Below the pieces are notes generated by a model. It was not told the origin of the DNA. It searched no databases and was given only the letters and a program-made list of their open reading frames with translations. A stretch of 63,981 bases of DNA, filler included, from Guillardia theta CCMP2712 (taxonomy: Eukaryota > Protista > Cryptophyta): the NCBI RefSeq assembly GCF_000315625.1. It is 9 parts of 9 records of this genome, joined end to end, with 100 filler letters (N's around TTAATTAATTAA, not from the genome) between each part and the next. Parts side by side here need not be neighbours in the genome. Positions count along the whole stretch, not along the records: positions 1 to 23,636 come from NW_005434632.1; 8 more parts are not named here. One strand, written 5' to 3'. The stretch's first letter is position 1, and each line of letters starts with the position of its first letter. This document shows positions 2,079-23,500 of this stretch, one piece after another. Made by a program: the position numbers and the translations under genes.

Positions 2079-3851
2079 ATGGGTTCTCTGCGTCGAGACG
2101 CGCAAGGAAGGGTGATATTTGAGCAGCTGGAGAATGGAGGAGAGGACGGGGAAGACTTCCTGCCTGAGTGGATGCGGGAGAGAGAAATGCGGGAAGCAAG
2201 CTCGCAGTCGGAGGAGGTGACCTTAAGGTCCACCGGCGCTCAAGCAAGATTCTTTGAGGCAGTTGCATGCCAGACGTCGAGCTTGCAGGACCTGCTGGCC
2301 CCACGTGAAGATTCGCAGGCGATCAGCAGCAAGTTGGTTAGCGACATGGAGAGTGCGCTGCGAGCAAACGCTTCTTCGCAGGCGTTCCAGGGATACTCAG
2401 CGAGGTGGGAGGAGAACTCGATTGAGAACCTGCACCTGTATACTTTATCCACTCCCGCGCAATCAGACTCTTCCTCGACTTCTTCTTCTGCTGCTGCTGC
2501 TGCCGTTCAGAGTGTCTTGTCTCTCTCGTGGAACTGCAGGGGCAATCTTCTCGCGGTCGCCTACGGCAGCATCTCTCTTCTCGGCACTGACACGCGAGAG
2601 TCACGCGTGGCGGTCTGGAACCTCTCGAGGATTTTCTTGCGAGAAGGAGAACCCGATGACGTCATTCTCGCGTCCTCCAGCGTCACTTCCGTTCAGTTCC
2701 ATCCCAGGCATCCCGGCCTCCTCCTCTACGGCACGTCGTCGGGGGAAGTGAGCGGGCATGACCTGGGGAGGAAGGAGAGCTTTCAAGTGCGTCACGGCTC
2801 CCAGATGCATCGTGAAAGCATCAGCGCCCTCGAGTGGACTTACGACGCTCTGCTGGGTGACTTCCACCTGCTCTCGAGCTCTCTTGAGGGAGCGATGGTG
2901 CTTTGGCGGCTCAAGGAAGGGGATGGGGTCGAGCTCTGGCCGCTTGCATCCTTCAAGATGGAGCCGCCAGAAGATACCAACGTCGCGAGCCTGGGGCTTG
3001 TCTTTGCTCATGGCACTCAGAAGTTGAAGCCGCTAGGCTTGACATGCTTGAGGGTGGAGCGACTCACAGGGATGGAGGCACTGAGAGAAGGAGAACAAGA
3101 GAAGAAAGGACGCCAGGAGACTGGAGGTTTTCTCATCGGCACAGAGGTTGGTGGAGTTTTCCGCTGCTTTCTCAACTACTCGAAGATTCACATGAAGGTC
3201 AAGGCTCAGCTCGGAGAAGATTGCTTCAGGCAGCCCTCCTCGTCCTTCTCTTCCTCCGCCTCCTCCTCAAAGCTTCAGCTGCCCAAGATGGAGTGTCCTA
3301 TCACGTACTCGTTTTATCCTCATATGGGACCTGTGCACTCCGTCGCATTCTCTCCGCTTCTCCGGAATCTTTTTGCTTCGTGTGCCGCTGATGGCATCAT
3401 TCGTGTACACTCCTCCCTGCAGGCTGCGCCGCTCCTCCTCCTCGAGCCCTCCGTCTTGTCCATCTACTGTGTCGCCTGGTCGCCAATGAAGCCCCTGGTT
3501 CTTGCAGCTGGAGGCAGCGGCGGCCTCGTCTTCCTCTACGACCTCACTGTCGACCCCTCCAACCCTGTGCAGACCATGCGGGCGTCTCCTCGGGTCGCTC
3601 GCGCAGGAGGAGCAGGAGGAGAAGGATGGGAAGTGGAGTCAGAGGAGAGGGAGGCTGGAAGCAACGTGAACGCGCTTCTCTTCCAGGAAAGCGGGTCTTT
3701 GCTGGCTGCTGGCTGCTGGTCGGGAGAAACTCATGTGTGGCGGCTGAGAAATGAGGTAGGAAGAGAGCCCTTGCCCGTCTCTTCTGACAGCCTTCAGTTG
3801 TGCGAGCAGGTGCCTGAAGACGGGGAAGCTGCCAAGAAATTGCTAGGATGA
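2079..3851 (+). CDS. WDR34: WD40 protein, dynein-2 intermediate chain WDR34/DYNC2I2 (FAP133)-like
   Basis: 590-aa ORF with WD repeats. LSWNCRGNLLAVAYG, FLIGTEVGGVFRC and FYPHMGPVHSVAFSPLLRNLFASCAADGIIRVHSSLQAAPLLLL...VAWSPMKPLVLAA match my recollection of the WDR34 C-terminal pattern. Confidence 0.85.
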   Translation: MGSLRRDAQGRVIFEQLENGGEDGEDFLPEWMREREMREASSQSEEVTLRSTGAQARFFEAVACQTSSLQDLLAPREDSQAISSKLVSDMESALRANASSQAFQGYSARWEENSIENLHLYTLSTPAQSDSSSTSSSAAAAAVQSVLSLSWNCRGNLLAVAYGSISLLGTDTRESRVAVWNLSRIFLREGEPDDVILASSSVTSVQFHPRHPGLLLYGTSSGEVSGHDLGRKESFQVRHGSQMHRESISALEWTYDALLGDFHLLSSSLEGAMVLWRLKEGDGVELWPLASFKMEPPEDTNVASLGLVFAHGTQKLKPLGLTCLRVERLTGMEALREGEQEKKGRQETGGFLIGTEVGGVFRCFLNYSKIHMKVKAQLGEDCFRQPSSSFSSSASSSKLQLPKMECPITYSFYPHMGPVHSVAFSPLLRNLFASCAADGIIRVHSSLQAAPLLLLEPSVLSIYCVAWSPMKPLVLAAGGSGGLVFLYDLTVDPSNPVQTMRASPRVARAGGAGGEGWEVESEEREAGSNVNALLFQESGSLLAAGCWSGETHVWRLRNEVGREPLPVSSDSLQLCEQVPEDGEAAKKLLG

Positions 3852-4912
3852 TGAGACGAGAGCAGAAGAGACCAGGAGGAGTAGGATGGGGCAAAGGCCA
3901 TCTAGAGTAAGTGCTGTAATCAACTCCACTCCTTCACGCCAAAAGGCTTCGAAGTTTGTTTCAAGCTTGCCTCCCGGGTCTCTTTATAACACCGTCACCA
4001 GTGCTCTTGCCGATTCAATACGCCGCTCTCGAGCATGAAGTGCACGTCGATCTCTCCGTTCTTGTAACTGTCTGAGCTAGTCAACGGCTCACTCTCATCC
4101 GATGATCATGGATTGTCCGCTAGTGACCGTACGGCCGGACGGTGAGGCGGGTCACCGGGCCGGGCCGGGCCGCCCGCCGCTCCGACCGGCGACATGCCAT
4201 TTTCGAGGCTCGGTACCGTATGACTCAGTGATCCGCCGGCATGCCAGTGTCCGAGGACGGTGACGTCAGTGACCGTTGAAGACTCGACCGATTGGACCGT
4301 ACTTGTCACTGGCTGCCGATTTAGACGGTCGGACTCGAGCCTGACTCTCAGTGCCCGGGCCGGGCAACTTGAAGGCACGGTGTCCGAGGTGCCGACGGGC
4401 CGGGGAGGGCCCGGCCCGGCCTACACTGGCACGATGATTATTGAGGCGGACTCTGTTTCAAGTTTATGCCGGGAAGTTTTGTCATTGAGGCTGAGGCGAG
4501 CTCTGTTAGTTAGTACTGATCGGATCACCCCCGAGAGTCACAGGCTTTTGTGTATCAACGAGTACCCCTTGTATGGTACCCCTTGTCGTGTATCCTCGAG
4601 TACCCCCATATACCACCCGTATATCTACCAACTGCCGATAATAACCCCCTCCCACGCAAAAATTTAACCCCCCTTGAGGGTGAGAGGGGTGGGGTCTTTC
4701 TGGACCATACTGAAACGTAACTTTGAGTAAAGAGAATCAGGGTATCTCAGTACATTATTGGGCTTTGAGTAAAAGCTTGTTGGATACACCTTCCTTTTTA
4801 ACCTGCAGCATGGCAGCCCCAGTCGTGAAGCTGTTCCTGTGCTGAAGTTGCTGCCCGAGCCACAACACTTCCATCACCTTCACTCCTTACCCAACCAGAT
4901 TCAGCATCATCC

Positions 4913-7900
4913 ATGAGCTCAAAGCTGCTTGCGCTCGTTATGCAGCCATCTCGGCTCACGTTCCTGCAGCGCAAGTCCAAGCTCTGCCTTGAGAGCAGCG
5001 ATGACAAGGTGCACTTCTTTGTCTTCCGATGGCATCAGGTCAAACACACGGATGGGCTTCGGCAGATAGATGAGGTTGAGGACAGAGAGTTGAGAGCCTT
5101 CGATGAACAGGTGTTTGCGGACGAGCTTCATAAAGAACTGCATGCGAGGATGAAACCAGAGCTGTCATGGTTGTTCAAGATCTATGCGCATAAGATTTAC
5201 CTGGACGTCAACTGCATCTCCTATCTGTCAGTCAACCACCAGGCGTTCAGCAAAGAGAGGTACCTGGGGTACTGCACGATGTTCGTGCCGGTGATAACCT
5301 GGGGTAAAGTGACAAGCGTGCTTGGCATACTGGAAGGAGTGCAGGAGGGGTCTGACAGGGAGTGCGAATTCCTACAGCTTGTACTTGCGATGATCTACCT
5401 GCTCGAGAAGAATGCCGGTCGATTGAGACTAGTCATGCCGATCCTTCGAGACGAGGGAGGAGGATTTGTACCTCTGGAGGAGGCCGTAGGGAGGCTGAGT
5501 AGCGCAGGATCAAGTTTGAACAGCCAGAAGGCGTGCTTGCTCTTGCTAGGGGCGGGAGTGCAGGAAGACAAGGACAAGATGCTGGCTTATCTGAGCGGCG
5601 TGTCGGTGCGAGATGCTGTGATGAAGCTTCTGTCGAACTCAAGCAGGAGGATACTGGGACTTGGAAGTGAACCTGCAGCAGTGCGAGGAGCATGCGGGGT
5701 GTACCTGGTAGCAAAGGGTCTAGACGAGAGGAGGAGTGCAGAGGGAGCTGGTGCTGTAATAACTGAGCACCTGGTTGATGAGCTGAGGGAGCAGGTAGCC
5801 GAACGGCTTTTGCATTATGAGAAGCACAACCCGCGGGGGTCAGAGATGACGCAGGTGTTGAAGCAGACTGGGACGTTCGAGCTCCTGCACGAGTTCTTTG
5901 CGCTTCGGGGCATCGACTCGCTAGACCGACTGACTGCGGTGAACACGATGAAGTCGATGAGGGGTGCGAGGACGTTGGATGACAGCGAGGAGTTGTGCGA
6001 AGAGATCAATAGAGCAAAGGAAACGTTTTACGACCAAGCGGTGGAAGCGATAGGAAGCATGGTAAACAAGTGCAGCAAGGATCAACGTTTCTTGCCGTTG
6101 GACACGAGGCTGGATGTATACAGAGACAACGAAGTTGACGGGATCCTGGCCCTGAGATCAAGTAATGCGCTGGAGACGGCGCTGCTGAAGACGCCAGCTC
6201 AATGCTGTGTTGCCTTCTTGGGCTGCCTTCAATATGCGTTCCAGGGTGTGATGATACGGAGAATGATAGAACGGAATTCTATCTGGTTGTTAGACCCTCA
6301 TGCACAGCTTCCAGTAGAGCCGAGGACAGTGCAGGTGTCTCGACTTGTCGATGCCTGCCTGGGCTTTGTGTGGGGATCCATGTACATGGCAGGGCTCTTG
6401 ATGTGCAAATACAATACGCCATTGAACGCGAAGCGTGTGTTTATAGGAGCAGCACATCTCATGCTTTGGCTGAAGATCATCTCGTCTATATCAGATTTCA
6501 TCCAGTGCGGACCCAGGGAATACGAATCTACAAGTTGCAGCGGGTTCTCTTCGTTTGTTATAATCGCCAGCATAGTGTTCGTTCTTTACTTTGTGCACTT
6601 CAAGCAGCACTACATCTGGATAGTCGCCTTCCTCTTCCAGGGAGCCTACTGCATCAGAGATGGGTTCATAACCCCCGAGGAATCAAAGATCATGTTTGTG
6701 GTTCTCGGGATTATCTGCCTCTTGATTGATGTTATGATTGTTGTCAAGTACCGGATCTGTTACTACCAGACTTTCAAAGATCTCAGTGTGGCCATGGAAG
6801 GCTTCGAGAAGACTTGGAGCCGGATCGTGGCCACCTGCACTGATAAGATAGATGATATCAGCAACAACGTGCAGACAATCTCACAGGAGCTAAAGATATG
6901 GACTCGAAGGCAAGGATGCTTGTTGGCGATGATGAAGGGACGAACTTCGCGGTACTCGAGTAGTTGCGGGAAGATTCGGCAGCAGAACAAAAGCATCGAG
7001 ACGTTGTTCGAGCATGCGCAGGAAGTCAGCGCCGCGTTCCAGATGTGGGTGGGGCAGTGGAACCCTGTGGGTGAAGTTGTGCATGGCAAAGTTAAGTCTT
7101 GCGAGCGAGCGATTCAGAAGACTGTGAGGTCGTACCACCGGGACGCGTCATGCTTGACCGACCTTGTGCGATGTACAGTGGTGGTGAAGACTGTGGAAGA
7201 GGTGCTGGTGTGGGTGAAGGGGTTGCGGTCAATGTCCGTGGTAGCTAAGGGACTGAGTGGATCCATAAATGAAGAGATCAAAATGTTGTCCATAGGCGAG
7301 GTAGGGGAGGGAGGCGAGGCGAGGTCTTTATCGCTGACGTGCACTTCAGGAGACGTATTTGAACATCACAAGCATCAAGAACAGGTAAGAGGAAGAGGGA
7401 AGGGAATCTACTGCGGTGAAGGAGCCAGAGCGTCAACATGGCAAGGGTAGGGAGGCTGATACTCTACGGGCAGATATGATTGGAGATGCAATCTAAAGGC
7501 TTGCGGCGGGTACCGGGACCTTTGTGTGTGTGTCGAGGTAAGACCGAGGAAGAGGCGGGTTTGAAGCAGCCAAACAGAGGAGAAATGTCAGAGGAGTGTG
7601 AAATGCTTTACAGGTGGGATGGACAGTGAACGCAACGAACAAGGAATGCACCTTTGTGCCGCTGAAGCAATGGGATACGACACCGAACCTTCGACGCCAT
7701 ATTTGTGAGATTCAGGTAGAGGACAATGAGAGGATGAGAGAGGAGACCTTTTTTCAAGGGGAGGAGAAGGGCACGATAGAAGAGAGGAGGAGAGGAAAGA
7801 TGGAGACTGATTGATAGAGGAAGAGAGGGGAGAAGGATTGTGGAGGGGAGACGAAGGCCGATATTGAACAAAAGGGACTGCAGGTGCTGTTGGAGGATCT

Positions 7901-7964
7901 GCACAAAGTGAAGAAGCACCTGCACAAGGAGTATGTAAACTTCCGCAACGTCCTATGTCAATAA
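4913..7964 (+). CDS. Multi-pass membrane protein with N-terminal TIR-like and SAM-like regions and a C-terminal RelA/SpoT-like nucleotidyltransferase domain (~889 aa, 5 exons)
   Basis: Exons 4913-7300, 7350-7384, 7474-7537, 7614-7715 and 7884-7964 join in frame through GT-AG introns. They give KVKSCERAIQK...LTDLVRCTVV...SIKNR...GGYRDL...HICEIQ...HKEYVNFR. About 6 hydrophobic helices lie at ~6190-6750. Confidence 0.75.
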
Positions 7965-8027
7965 CATACAATCCTCTGTTGGAGAATTTGTCAACGAAGA
8001 CTATGCTTCTGCTTGAGTTGATTTTAG

Positions 8028-8273
8028 CTAGTCACCAAATGGTTCTCGTGTGAGCGTGTAGATAGATGAGGTGATCGTCCTCCTCTGGTGCCGAACTTCA
8101 TCCTTCAACTCGCCTGCGGAGGAGAAGGCGGAGGAGGCAGTCTCCGGAGGAGAAGGCAGAGGCGGAGGAGAAGGCAGAGCAGGACGAGGACGAGGCGGAG
8201 GCGGAGGCGGAGGCGGACGAGAAGGCCTGAGCGCATCCGAATCCCACTCCGCTGTCAGCGTGGCTCCATGGTG
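8028..8273 (-). pseudogene. 3' fragment of an unidentified gene abutting the WDR34 duplicate
   Basis: Reads ...HHGATLTAEWDSDALRPSR-polyPro-...ELKDEVRHQRRTITSSIYTLTREPFGD*. Its 5' side is replaced by the duplicated block at 8274. Confidence 0.3.
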
Positions 8274-8852
8274 ATCATTCGTGTACACTCCTCCCTGCAG
8301 GCTGCGCCGCTCCTCCTCCTCGAGCCCTCCGTCTTGTCCATCTACTGTGTCGCCTGGTCGCCAATGAAGCCCCTGGTTCTTGCAGCTGGAGGCAGCGGCG
8401 GCCTCGTCTTCCTCTACGACCTCACTGTCGACCCCTCCAACCCTGTGCAGACCATGCGGGCGTCTCCTCGGGTCGCTCGCGCAGGAGGAGCAGGAGGAGA
8501 AGGATGGGAAGTGGAGTCAGAGGAGAGGGAGGCTGGAAGCAACGTGAACGCGCTTCTCTTCCAGGAGAGCGGGTCTTTGCTGGCTGCTGGCTGCTGGTCG
8601 GGAGAAACTCATGTGTGGCGGCTGAGAAATGAGGTAGGAAGAGAGCCCTTGCCCGTCTCTTCTGACAGCCTTCAGTTGTGCGAGCAGGTGCCTGAAGACG
8701 GGGAAGCTGCCAAGAAATTGCTAGGATGATGAGACGAGAGCAGAAGAGACCAGGAGGAGTAGGATGGGGCAAAGGCCATCTAGAGTAAGTGCTGTCAGTG
8801 TAATCAACTCCACTCCTTCACGCCAAAAGGCTTCGAAGTTTGTTTCAAGCTT
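8274..8852 (+). pseudogene. Near-identical duplicate of the WDR34 3' end and downstream sequence (copy of 3396-3968)
   Basis: Direct sequence identity. Differences I could see: one synonymous GAA>GAG and a 6-nt insertion after the stop. Confidence 0.95.
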
Positions 8853-20569: not shown

Positions 20570-23500
20570 CTAAACCCTAAACTTAAGCGAGCTCACGGGA
20601 CAACCTATGGGAGCTAGCTGTGTCCTTGCTGGGGGTGGCCGACATCTCTCGAGCTTCTGTGTGAAGGTGAGCAAGCAGCTGGAGAAGAGGTGGGAGCTGA
20701 CCTGGTAGAGACATGAGGTGGCCGTGTGGCGAGGAGATGCAGATGTCGGCAGCGAGGCGGGGAGAAGGAAGGAGAGCAAGGCGAGCCTTGTCAAGGATCC
20801 TGGTGGAAGTGAGAGGGGCAACGGAAGTTCTTGCAGGCGAGGGACCTTCGCATCTTGCTCCTCGGAGTGACTTGAGGATGGGAGGCCCTCGGCTGCTGGA
20901 AAAGAGGTGGGAGCTGCTCCAAGTCACCGCTGGCATGAGAGACCAGGCATGAGACCCCTCCTGGGCTTCTGCTCAGCAGTCACTGAAAAAGGAGAGGGGG
21001 AAGGAAGGGGAGCTGCCAAACCGAGGAGGAGCCTGAAGGCTTCCGTTGGAGTAGATGGAGATCGTCTCCAAGAGATCCTCTCGCGTTCTCGCCTTCTCCC
21101 TGCCCATGTCTTCCCTGTCATTGCTTGCTGGCATCATCGGTTGCGAGCGACTTCGCGCGTTTCTTCCATGCTCGTCAGCCCTGGTTGATCTCAGCTGTCG
21201 GATCTGAACAGAAGGTGAGAAGCGTCGATGAACAACATTGACCCTCCACCTCATGTCTGAGCTCTGCCATCGCCTCCATCACATCCGCGTGTACCTTGAA
21301 GCAGGTCAAGATCTGTCCTGCTTTCGCTTCACGACTCACATCAAAAGAAGTCTTCTCCTCCTCAAGGCTGGCGATCCTCTCGCTCAAATGCCGGATCTCC
21401 CCCGTGATATCCGCAAGCTGAAGAATGATCAACAAGGAGAGGATTCGAGAGGGGATGGTAAGAGAAGGGAGAGCGAGCATTGAAGGGAGCGAGGAGATGA
21501 ACGAGGAAGAAGACGACATGAACGAGAGGAGGAGGATGCAGGTAACCATCTCGATGATCTCGTTACAAGGTTGCGAACTAGAAAGGTTGCGATCGGGAAG
21601 CCTAACGGCATCTCAGCGAGAGGAACAACGAGCAGGAAATGGATGATGGCGAAGATTACAAGGAGAGAGGCAAAGTGAGGGGAGTAGGAGGAGTGAAAGA
21701 AGAAGAGTTGACCTTAGCGAGGGGATCTGCAGAGGTTTAGGGTTAGGGGTTAAGTTTAGCCCTGCGCGCGCTTCTTGCTCGGCTTCACATCCATCGCGAG
21801 TTCGGGGAGGCAGGAGTGGCCGATTCAAGTCGGGTCGCGGCATCGCCTCGATCCTGGGAGTTGAGGCGAAGGAGAAGGAGCCGCTTCCTCTGCGAAGCTT
21901 TGCGGGAGCTTTTTGCAGCTGAGGCAGCAGGTGGGTGAAGCCGTTGGAGATCTTGAACCTGTTGAAGTCATGCAGAGCCTTGTAGAAACCTGTCATGGTG
22001 TCGAGCCGATGCTTCTCCAGCAGCTCCGACGGCATCAGCCAGCTGCCCCTCCACCTCCACCATTGCTGGATGACTGAGGCTGCCGCCTCCATCAGCTTGA
22101 GGTGAAGCTGATTCAGATTCATGCGCTTGATCAGCTTATCCTCGTCCCCTGAAAGCTTCAGTGAGCTCGTCGTCGACGCCGTCGTGAGCGCAATGACGAT
22201 GGGGGTCCACGCGATGCACACGAAGCAAGCCATCCTGCCGATGTGAGTGGCGGGGGAGGTCATGCCGTAGCCCGTCGTGGCCTGGGTGAGGACGTTCCAG
22301 ACCTGATCCCAGAAGTACCTGCTGTGATCGACGTAGGCCGGGCCTTCGGAGAGACGGAAGAGGTACGAGCAGGGCATCAGCACCATGATGGTACAAACTG
22401 CAATCACTGCTGGGGGGCTCTTAGACATGGCGATCTTGAAGGAGAGCATGCGATAGCTTGTTCCTCGGTCTTGGCTGAGCTGCTGCACGGACTTTATGAG
22501 CTCGAAGTCTTGAGTGCGGTAGGAAGACTCAAGGTTGAAGAAGAGAAGGTACAAGCTCGCAAGGATCCAACTCCACAGATGAAACAAGCGAACGAGCATG
22601 AGAGCACACATGATGGACTCAAACCGGTAGAAAAGAGGCCGTCCAAGCACGTTCCATTCATAATCATTCTTGTAGAAAGGAAAGGGGTGAATCATGCAAA
22701 TGCCAAGCTCAGCAACTAGCCAGAAGAGCTCTCGCTTTGTTATCTTTATGAGGTGTTCCCTGGCATGAGATCCAAACATGTGGAAGATGTTCTTTTCCTG
22801 CAAACGTTTCTTTGTCTGCTTCAACTGTATCTCCTGCTTGAACCGAATCAAGATTGCAACCAGCAGGCAGATCACTGATAATGAGCACAACGACTTGAGA
22901 ATATTCCCGTACTTCCAATCGCAAGAGCGCGCGTATGCTGAGTTCGACGCTCCTCGTGCGAGAGCTTCTAGCTCAGCTTCGCTTGGAAATTGCGTGACAT
23001 AGTCGGGAGAGACGCAGACTTCGTTGATCAAGATTCCGAGCGCAAGGGTGAGGAGAGACAAGGCTACGACCCAGGTCTGTCGGCGATACACTCCTCGTTC
23101 AAGGGATTGAATCAACTCGCGGTCTTGAGTCGTCAGCTCATTCTTTTCCGATCTCAGCTTCTCGATCTGAATGATGGCCTTCGCCACTTTGCTGCTTATG
23201 TAGCTCCATGTCAGCCATTCAATCCACTAATTTGTTTTCGACAACCTCCTCTCCTACCCTTCTCCGCTTTTCAGTGTCTCCCTTCCTCTGTGACCACCCT
23301 CGCCATTCTACCCTTTTCTATTCTCCTCGCTTTGACTCTCTCCTGCTCTACTGTTCTGCTCTCCTCTTGGGCATGAGTTTACTCTATTCGGTTATTCCTT
23401 TCCATGTCTTTTTCATTCTGTTCCACCGCTTCTCCTTCCCTTCAGGCTTCCCTCCCCTCCCCTCCCCTCCCCTCCCCTCCTCTCCCCTCCCCTCCCCTCC

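Follow-up and report, generated by a model that had tools for sequence, protein, structure and literature searches.

TIR-like, SAM-like and RSH synthetase-like domains combined in a predicted six-helix membrane protein of the alga Guillardia theta

Introduction

The RelA/SpoT homologue (RSH) enzymes of eukaryotes are known mainly as plastid enzymes of (p)ppGpp metabolism, joined by the animal hydrolase Mesh1 and by a little-studied effector domain of some fungal NLRs. Here, we describe a locus of the cryptophyte Guillardia theta CCMP2712 whose product carries an RSH synthetase-like domain behind TIR-like, SAM-like and membrane segments. The DNA analyzed is a stretch of 63,981 nucleotides joined from nine records of RefSeq assembly GCF_000315625.1 (the window, along which all positions are counted), and the locus lies at 4913-7964 on the + strand. 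It corresponds to GUITHDRAFT_109847 of the nuclear genome, with 100% identity over the open reading frame (ORF). The annotation had not overlooked the locus, as this gene model already exists; the public NCBI entry, of 896 amino acids, is labelled only "hypothetical protein". A preliminary description made from the DNA sequence alone had proposed an algal membrane protein with TIR-like, SAM-like and RelA/SpoT-like nucleotidyltransferase domains, and the host is indeed an alga.

By sequence, the closest described protein is Tas1 of Pseudomonas aeruginosa (PDB 6OX6), a (p)ppApp synthetase toxin of a type VI secretion system. Whereas Tas1 is an effector that a bacterium secretes and to which an immunity protein, Tis1, belongs, the Guillardia domain is the predicted cytosolic C-terminus of a eukaryotic six-pass TIR/SAM protein, and 8-10 residues are inserted between its KN(R) and GYR motifs. 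With regard to a cognate immunity or antitoxin gene, the genes next to GUITHDRAFT_109847 are unrelated, and operon logic is inapplicable in a eukaryote. RelQ/SAS1 and RelP/SAS2 (PDB 5DED, 6FGK and 6EWZ) gave no detectable sequence match to the Guillardia domain; these are soluble bacterial homotetramers making (p)ppGpp, devoid of TIR, SAM and membrane parts. CapRel and FaRel2, toxic small alarmone synthetases (toxSAS) that pyrophosphorylate tRNA, belong to a bacterial and phage toxin-antitoxin context, and their regulatory domain is a pseudo-zinc-finger, not a TIR/SAM assembly.

Among proteins with TIR and SAM domains, SARM1/TIR-1 is an NADase of the order ARM-SAM-SAM-TIR. The Guillardia order is reversed, with the TIR-like region before a single degenerate SAM; E642 of SARM1 is replaced by Leu, the enzymatic output would come from a different domain, and the protein is predicted to be membrane-embedded. 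The plant and algal RSH1-4 and CRSH likewise belong to the RSH superfamily and come from photosynthetic eukaryotes. Plastid targeting, an HD hydrolase domain or a remnant of one, and TGS/ACT or EF-hand domains characterize these enzymes, which also pass the Pfam RelA_SpoT model, whereas none of these features is seen in the Guillardia protein. Some fungal NLRs, which carry N-terminal RelA/SpoT effector domains, show that a eukaryotic modular protein of the immune type can use an RSH-type domain for its effector or signalling part (PMC10197012). They are, however, soluble ATPases of the NOD/STAND type that have repeats as sensors and the domain at the N-terminus; the Guillardia protein has no NOD, has the domain at the C-terminus and is polytopic. 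A literature search of incomplete coverage, which did not extend to the spelling "RelA/SpoT", returned no paper on a fusion of TIR with an RSH or alarmone-synthetase domain in algae or protists.

Results

Gene structure and transcripts

Spliced GUITHDRAFT_109847 has five exons and a coding sequence (CDS) of 2670 nt, encoding 889 amino acids in which a TIR-like region, a SAM-like module, six membrane helices and an RSH synthetase-like domain can with high confidence be placed one after the other (Table 1). The ORF at 4913..7450 runs past an in-frame stop once four short GT-AG introns are removed. Public transcript assemblies were mapped onto positions 4700-8200, and contigs from three separate studies contained exactly four skips, of 49, 89, 76 and 168 nt, which are all four predicted introns. 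The preliminary description had proposed this splicing and had named a lack of cDNA support as its main point of failure; the transcript contigs agree with the proposal. One contig of run X6 (2679 nt) spans 4900-7960 as a single piece, and a run X2 contig spans 5437-7992 with all four junctions. GUITHDRAFT_109847 is a real, expressed gene with one spliced mRNA over the whole CDS.

The NCBI model places the donor of intron 3 at a GT 21 nt further downstream (7559) and reads 7538-7558 as coding, which adds seven residues (VRPRKRR). This donor was rejected in favour of that at 7538, as the seven residues are absent from the transcripts and from the paralogues GUITHDRAFT_109014 and 109015. Transcript contigs start at ~4802-4826, upstream of the main ATG at 4913, and the apparent 5′ untranslated region holds a short upstream ORF of 11 codons (4811-4846; MAAPVVKLFLC). 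In one run X1 contig of low depth (147 nt, depth 3; 7355-7500), intron 2 was retained and an extra G followed 7449; unspliced pre-mRNA, another allele or an error of assembly might account for this contig.

The C-terminal RSH synthetase-like domain

With the introns removed, all motifs of the RelA/SpoT synthetase-like series that had been predicted to be restored by splicing were located in the 889-residue protein: K728-x3-R732-x3-K736, D750-x2-R753, K806-N-R808, G820-Y-R-D-L, E861-I-Q863 and H877-x2-Y880. The donor site comprises K728, R732, K736 and R739, together with the Mg-binding D750 (7160-7162) and R753. An exhaustive profile search with four paralogues yielded 324 proteins, most of them sharing only the last ~210 residues, and 47 of these were aligned over the C-terminal domain (alignment A2; ~30-40% overall identity). 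K728, R732, K736, R739, D750, R753, R822, E861 and Q863 were invariant in A2, while the Arg of KNR was conserved across it, yet not invariant. Such invariance is far beyond chance. For FaRel2 and other toxSAS, the residues binding the phosphates of the donor ATP, the Mg-binding Asp, the acceptor-loop Arg and the catalytic Glu have been described (PMC11782079), and the invariant residues of A2 correspond to the FaRel2 residues listed there. Judged from this alignment, the ligands of donor ATP and Mg2+ and the catalytic Glu are all kept in the Guillardia domain.

Scanning the ORF, its pieces and the full-length paralogues against Pfam, at E-values up to 10, gave no significant family for the protein or the paralogues, and the domain assignments therefore needed family profiles and structure prediction. 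The gathering threshold of PF04607 RelA_SpoT (27 bits) was not reached, the best relative scoring 22 bits (E 2e-4). Weak colinear matches to RelA_SpoT were present in 8 of the 47 A2 relatives, and the EIQIRT segments of relatives matched positions 80-103 of that profile. On these profile comparisons, the curated Pfam RelA_SpoT model does not cover the domain, which forms a divergent clade. A plain sequence search of the PDB gave a single borderline match, to Tas1 (E 0.007), which became the sole significant match when the A2 profile was compared with PDB sequences (E 1.3e-7). The alignment runs through a common signature, P-[IV]-K...E-R-A-x-Q-K...D-L-x-R-x-T, and the donor-ATP motif K-x3-[S/R]-x3-K-x2-R with the following Asp and Arg aligns residue for residue with Tas1; by structural alignment, the two domains share 24% identity.

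The AlphaFold model of the domain (pLDDT 85, pTM 0.82) has the alpha/beta nucleotidyltransferase fold of RSH synthetases, and the best 50 Foldseek matches were all RSH synthetases (best E 8e-6), so the fold proposed for the C-terminus was recovered in a confident model. HD hydrolase, TGS, ACT and EF-hand domains were not detected by Pfam at E up to 10, in keeping with the earlier remark that no hydrolase domain is visible. The domain is thus a divergent, monofunctional and probably active RSH synthetase of the small-alarmone-synthetase type. As its catalytic residue set is invariant across the relatives, enzymatic activity is likely.

The N-terminal TIR-like region

The N-terminal region has the flavodoxin-like, five-strand TIR fold. 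In the predicted model, strands (E) and helices (H) alternate over residues 33-180 (E33-40, H65-87, E94-98, E121-130, H152-165, E177-180), and the final TIR helix is supplied by residues 272-305, after a helical insertion. The best seven Foldseek matches were plant TIR domains (probability 0.87-0.99, E from 0.016). No direct Pfam TIR match was obtained for this protein; a profile of 20 relatives covering residues 1-425 (alignment A3) matched the distant relative P0034 with 98% probability (E 1.4e-13), whose N-terminus is above the Pfam TIR_2 threshold (34.2 vs 28 bits), as is that of a second relative, P0069. The alternation in the model agrees with the TIR strand/helix pattern noted at the outset.

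When P0034 was aligned with the SARM1 TIR domain, the Glu of its L-M-E-F motif fell on the K-E-I Glu of SARM1, the catalytic E642. Fifteen distinct relatives have Glu in this column. The Guillardia protein and its three nearest paralogues have Leu there (Leu156, after Gln155), whereas His or Ser occurs in further copies from cryptophytes. The catalytic Glu is therefore lost, as had been suggested; the residue in its place is Leu156 and not the neighbouring Gln that had been named. Because of Leu156 in this column, NADase activity of the TIR-like region is not expected, and the region probably acts as a non-enzymatic assembly or adaptor surface.

The SAM-like module

The stretch first flagged as SAM-like (residues 315-340, nt ~5855-5932) lies inside a segment that is conserved across many relatives. 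A profile of 22 members (A4) matched almost exclusively SAM domains in the PDB, with SHIP2/EphA2 SAM at 6.8e-7 followed by ~20 further SAM domains, among them those of AIDA-1, caskins and Eph receptors. Pfam SAM_1 or SAM_2 matches were found in 12 of the 22, and the best matches of profile A3 are Eph SAM domains. Searched alone against Pfam, the Guillardia copy gave no SAM match, and its alignment to SAM covers only about the first 40 residues, or three helices; the model of the segment has helices at 307-319, 322-332 and 337-348, then a disordered stretch. The missing match and the short alignment are why the module is called degenerate. The stretch lies where it had been placed, and the SAM-like assignment of residues 300-352 holds at the level of the family, not for this protein taken singly.

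The membrane module

Six hydrophobic segments were found between residues 428 and 613, matching the approximately six transmembrane (TM) helices of the preliminary description. The module is conserved in 15 aligned relatives. It includes a QGAYC motif and an acidic loop (residues 528-542) with two Cys, the first of them within D-x2-Q-C; over the juxtamembrane motif and the membrane module together (6080-6751), there are invariant residues of Asp, Glu and Gln. Across the family, the short loops after helices 2 and 4 (L2, L4) and the one after TM6 are positive, and those after helices 3 and 5 (L3, L5) are acidic with a conserved Cys pair. Hydropathy and loop charges fit a predicted N-in/C-in six-pass topology, in which both ends, and with them the TIR-SAM part and the enzyme domain, would face the cytosol; the acidic two-Cys loop would then be on the non-cytosolic side. 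The module family had no convincing match when its profile was compared with PDB sequences and when the ESM Atlas (by features and by structure) and Pfam were searched. The best-ranking candidates, CD20-like and DsbB-like, were set aside as unconvincing (TM-score < 0.45), and the relatives gave weak Peptidase_M50 matches (E~0.02). The juxtamembrane motif and the six helices together are an unnamed membrane domain in its own right.

Relatives and domain combinations

The named relatives are cryptophyte proteins (Guillardia loci 108018, 109014-109016 and 117880; Hanusia phi; Baffinella frigidus), and the remainder come from MMETSP or EukProt transcriptomes and marine metagenomes. The order TIR-SAM-TM-RSH occurs in 17 of 185 collected proteins, a sample biased by the query, and at two metagenome loci. 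The three consecutively numbered paralogues GUITHDRAFT_109014-109016 are reported on one 631-kb contig, an arrangement suggestive of a tandem cluster; of these, 109016 is a C-terminal fragment (140 aa). The same RSH-like domain is found in other combinations in relatives P0022, P0034 and P0077. It occurs with HEPN_DZIP3, protein kinase and SAM in a 1443-aa arrangement on ~20 metagenome contigs, and also with a discoidin (F5/8 type C) domain placed after the SAM module. Such varied partners (kinase, HEPN, discoidin) are a modularity typical of conflict or signalling proteins.

Metagenome homologues of ~230 aa that appear to stand alone were considered as giant-virus genes, given the D5_N/PriCT_2 primase-like, U-box and ankyrin genes nearby. 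They do not, however, all stand alone: on two contigs of 27 and 31 kb (~51% GC), which may come from a protist or a large DNA virus, TIR-like and SAM-like ORFs lie directly upstream of the RSH-like ORF on the same strand (L001:1719-4721 and L002:5730-8696). The ~230-aa ORFs of these two contigs are C-terminal pieces of multi-domain genes split by a prokaryote-style gene caller, and the "standalone" catalogue entries are therefore, at least in part, multi-domain gene fragments. Two scans of viral contigs with a sub-family of the C-terminal domain found nothing. The first contig also encodes a separate small TIR_2 protein on the opposite strand (L001:5073-5642, -; 30.3 bits, above threshold) and the D5_N/PriCT_2 primase-like gene (L001:12363-12721, +), and U-box, VWA, ankyrin and E1-like genes are present near the RSH-like loci on the two contigs.

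Table 1. Features of GUITHDRAFT_109847, in positions of the window.
Feature	Position	Strand	Basis
Whole coding region, start codon to TAA stop	4913..7964	+	ORF list, splice model, identity, transcript contigs
Exon 1, aa 1-796: TIR-like, linker, SAM-like, membrane module, first half of RSH-like domain	4913..7300	+	Splice model, transcripts
TIR-fold core, aa ~32-200; Leu156 (5378-5380) at catalytic-Glu column, Gln155 adjacent	5006..5512	+	
Degenerate SAM-like helical module, aa 300-352	5810..5968	+	A4 family profile vs PDB and Pfam; A3 top matches Eph SAM domains
Conserved juxtamembrane motif D-x-R-x2-P-L ... R-D ... N-x2-E-T, before first membrane helix	6080..6193	+	Alignments A3, A5
Six-helix membrane module, aa 428-613	6194..6751	+	Hydropathy, family alignment, loop charges
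RSH synthetase-like (Tas1-like small alarmone synthetase) domain, aa 685-889, exons 1-5	6965..7964	+	Profiles, model, Foldseek, motifs
Intron 1, 49 nt, GT..AG	7301..7349	+	Skipped by contigs of runs X1, X2, X6
Exon 2, KNR motif, Arg codon split by intron 2	7350..7384	+	Splice model, transcripts, motif mapping
Intron 2, 89 nt, GT..AG	7385..7473	+	Transcript contigs
Exon 3, GYRDL acceptor-site loop, Y821/R822	7474..7537	+	Splice model, transcripts, motif mapping
Intron 3, 76 nt	7538..7613	+	Transcript contigs; NCBI donor differs (GT at 7559)
Exon 4, EIQ motif at its end: catalytic Glu861, Gln863	7614..7715	+	Splice model, transcripts, motif mapping
Intron 4, 168 nt, GT..AG	7716..7883	+	Transcript contigs
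Exon 5, C-terminal helix with H877-x2-Y880 and R884, then stop	7884..7964	+	Splice model, transcripts, motif mapping

Neighbouring sequence

Upstream of the gene, 2079-3851 (+) encodes a 590-aa WD40 beta-propeller protein. Downstream, a WD40-containing ORF at 8088-8729 (+) is probably an exon of a larger gene, and a purine-rich low-complexity stretch of GGAGGA, GAAGGC and GGCGGA units (8110-8230) lies at its start. An ORF at 21613-23187 (-) resembles an SK-type potassium channel.

Discussion

The combined results suggest a model of how GUITHDRAFT_109847 may operate. The explanation that we put forward, with moderate confidence, is a membrane TIR-SAM protein whose C-terminal pyrophosphokinase is controlled by oligomerization and has an output in stress or defence. 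The membrane module would anchor the protein and may serve as a sensor; self-association via the TIR/SAM region, for which the membrane module may provide the trigger, would switch on the enzyme. The enzyme would then move the beta,gamma-pyrophosphate from ATP onto the 3'-OH of its acceptor, most probably a nucleotide of adenine or guanine, giving (p)ppApp- or (p)ppGpp-like products, and the outcome would be a signal or the depletion of ATP in stress or defence. A purine nucleotide is favoured because of the sequence affinity to Tas1 and the basic acceptor loop, and we hold to this choice only tentatively. Control by TIR/SAM self-association and a role in stress or defence are modelled on SARM1, plant and bacterial TIR systems and fungal NLRs, and by the same analogy a second-messenger or immune signalling role is reasonable. 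The data show the gene structure, its expression, the TIR and RSH folds, the conservation of residues and the recurrence of the architecture; catalytic activity, acceptor, regulation, topology and biological role are points that we infer.

Several observations weigh against this explanation. On its own, the protein stays below the Pfam thresholds for RelA_SpoT, TIR and SAM; the N-terminal model is only of medium quality (pLDDT 72), and the E-values of the TIR matches in Foldseek are weak (0.016). The topology is derived solely from hydropathy and charge counts, and the first hydrophobic segment is weak (mean Kyte-Doolittle value 1.46). The acceptor cannot be read from the sequence; among solved structures, SAS1, which makes (p)ppGpp, is best by Z-score, Tas1, which makes (p)ppApp, is best by sequence, and CapRel, which modifies tRNA, fits about as well as Tas1. 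Catalysis, localization and biological role are deduced, a defence role being suggested only by analogy with other proteins bearing these domains, and the neighbouring genes (WD40 proteins, an SK-type channel) have no evident link and are uninformative on function.

That an active enzyme of the CapRel, FaRel2 and PhRel2 style might instead target the 3' CCA end of tRNA and shut down translation is the main alternative, one that we regard as unlikely. About as doubtful is a more elaborate form of our own proposal, in which the family is an innate-immune or cell-death effector of protists that employs the chemistry of bacterial toxins within the eukaryotic cell: an oligomerized membrane TIR-SAM assembly would switch on a Tas1-like enzyme that makes (p)ppApp-type messengers or drains ATP to abort an infection, and in the Glu-bearing relatives the pyrophosphokinase might use NAD-derived products of the TIR domain to form a novel signal, a pyrophosphorylated ADP-ribose. 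To our knowledge, (p)ppApp-type nucleotides are not known as messengers from the eukaryotic cytosol. It is more improbable still that the RSH-like domain is a pseudoenzyme or nucleotide-binding sensor in a protein acting purely as a membrane scaffold or adaptor. The TIR of this clade is already without its catalytic Glu, so enzymatic loss has occurred in the lineage, but the nine donor-site and catalytic residues are invariant in 47 divergent relatives, the pattern expected from selection on catalysis.

As Guillardia bears a plastid and the domain shares its fold with (p)ppGpp synthetases, a divergent housekeeping enzyme serving the stringent response of the plastid, comparable to plant and algal RSH1-4 and CRSH, was also weighed. 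It was rejected as very improbable, since Pfam detected no hydrolase, TGS, ACT or EF-hand domain and no RelA_SpoT match, and the architecture differs: the domain follows TIR and SAM modules and forms the C-terminal end of a six-pass membrane protein, whose N-terminus enters the TIR fold directly, unlike a bipartite plastid-targeting leader, and the family is multi-copy and fused to variable domains. A splice model that wrongly joins two or more neighbouring genes might be suspected, as four short introns were inferred and the public model differs by seven residues. Single transcript contigs of runs X6 and X2 carry all four junctions, however, the former spanning the CDS, and the same domain order recurs in paralogues and other cryptophytes; an artefact of this kind is hardly credible and was rejected. 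The reading that we retain is that of an oligomerization-controlled membrane pyrophosphokinase.

The data presented here add to the eukaryotic RSH enzymes a well-supported, expressed, multi-copy protist family in which a Tas1-like synthetase domain with intact active-site residues is wired to TIR, SAM and a membrane module. The architecture is a new variant assembled from known kinds of domains. The analysis also defined an unnamed six-helix membrane module and corrected the public gene model by seven residues. Should the enzyme prove active, signalling or defence proteins of eukaryotes would have adopted an alarmone chemistry of the toxin type, TIR/SAM assemblies would gain an enzymatic output besides NAD cleavage, and there would be a direct route to asking whether (p)ppApp-like nucleotides occur in the eukaryotic cytosol. 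The family may thus represent an unstudied nucleotide-based stress or defence pathway in protists.

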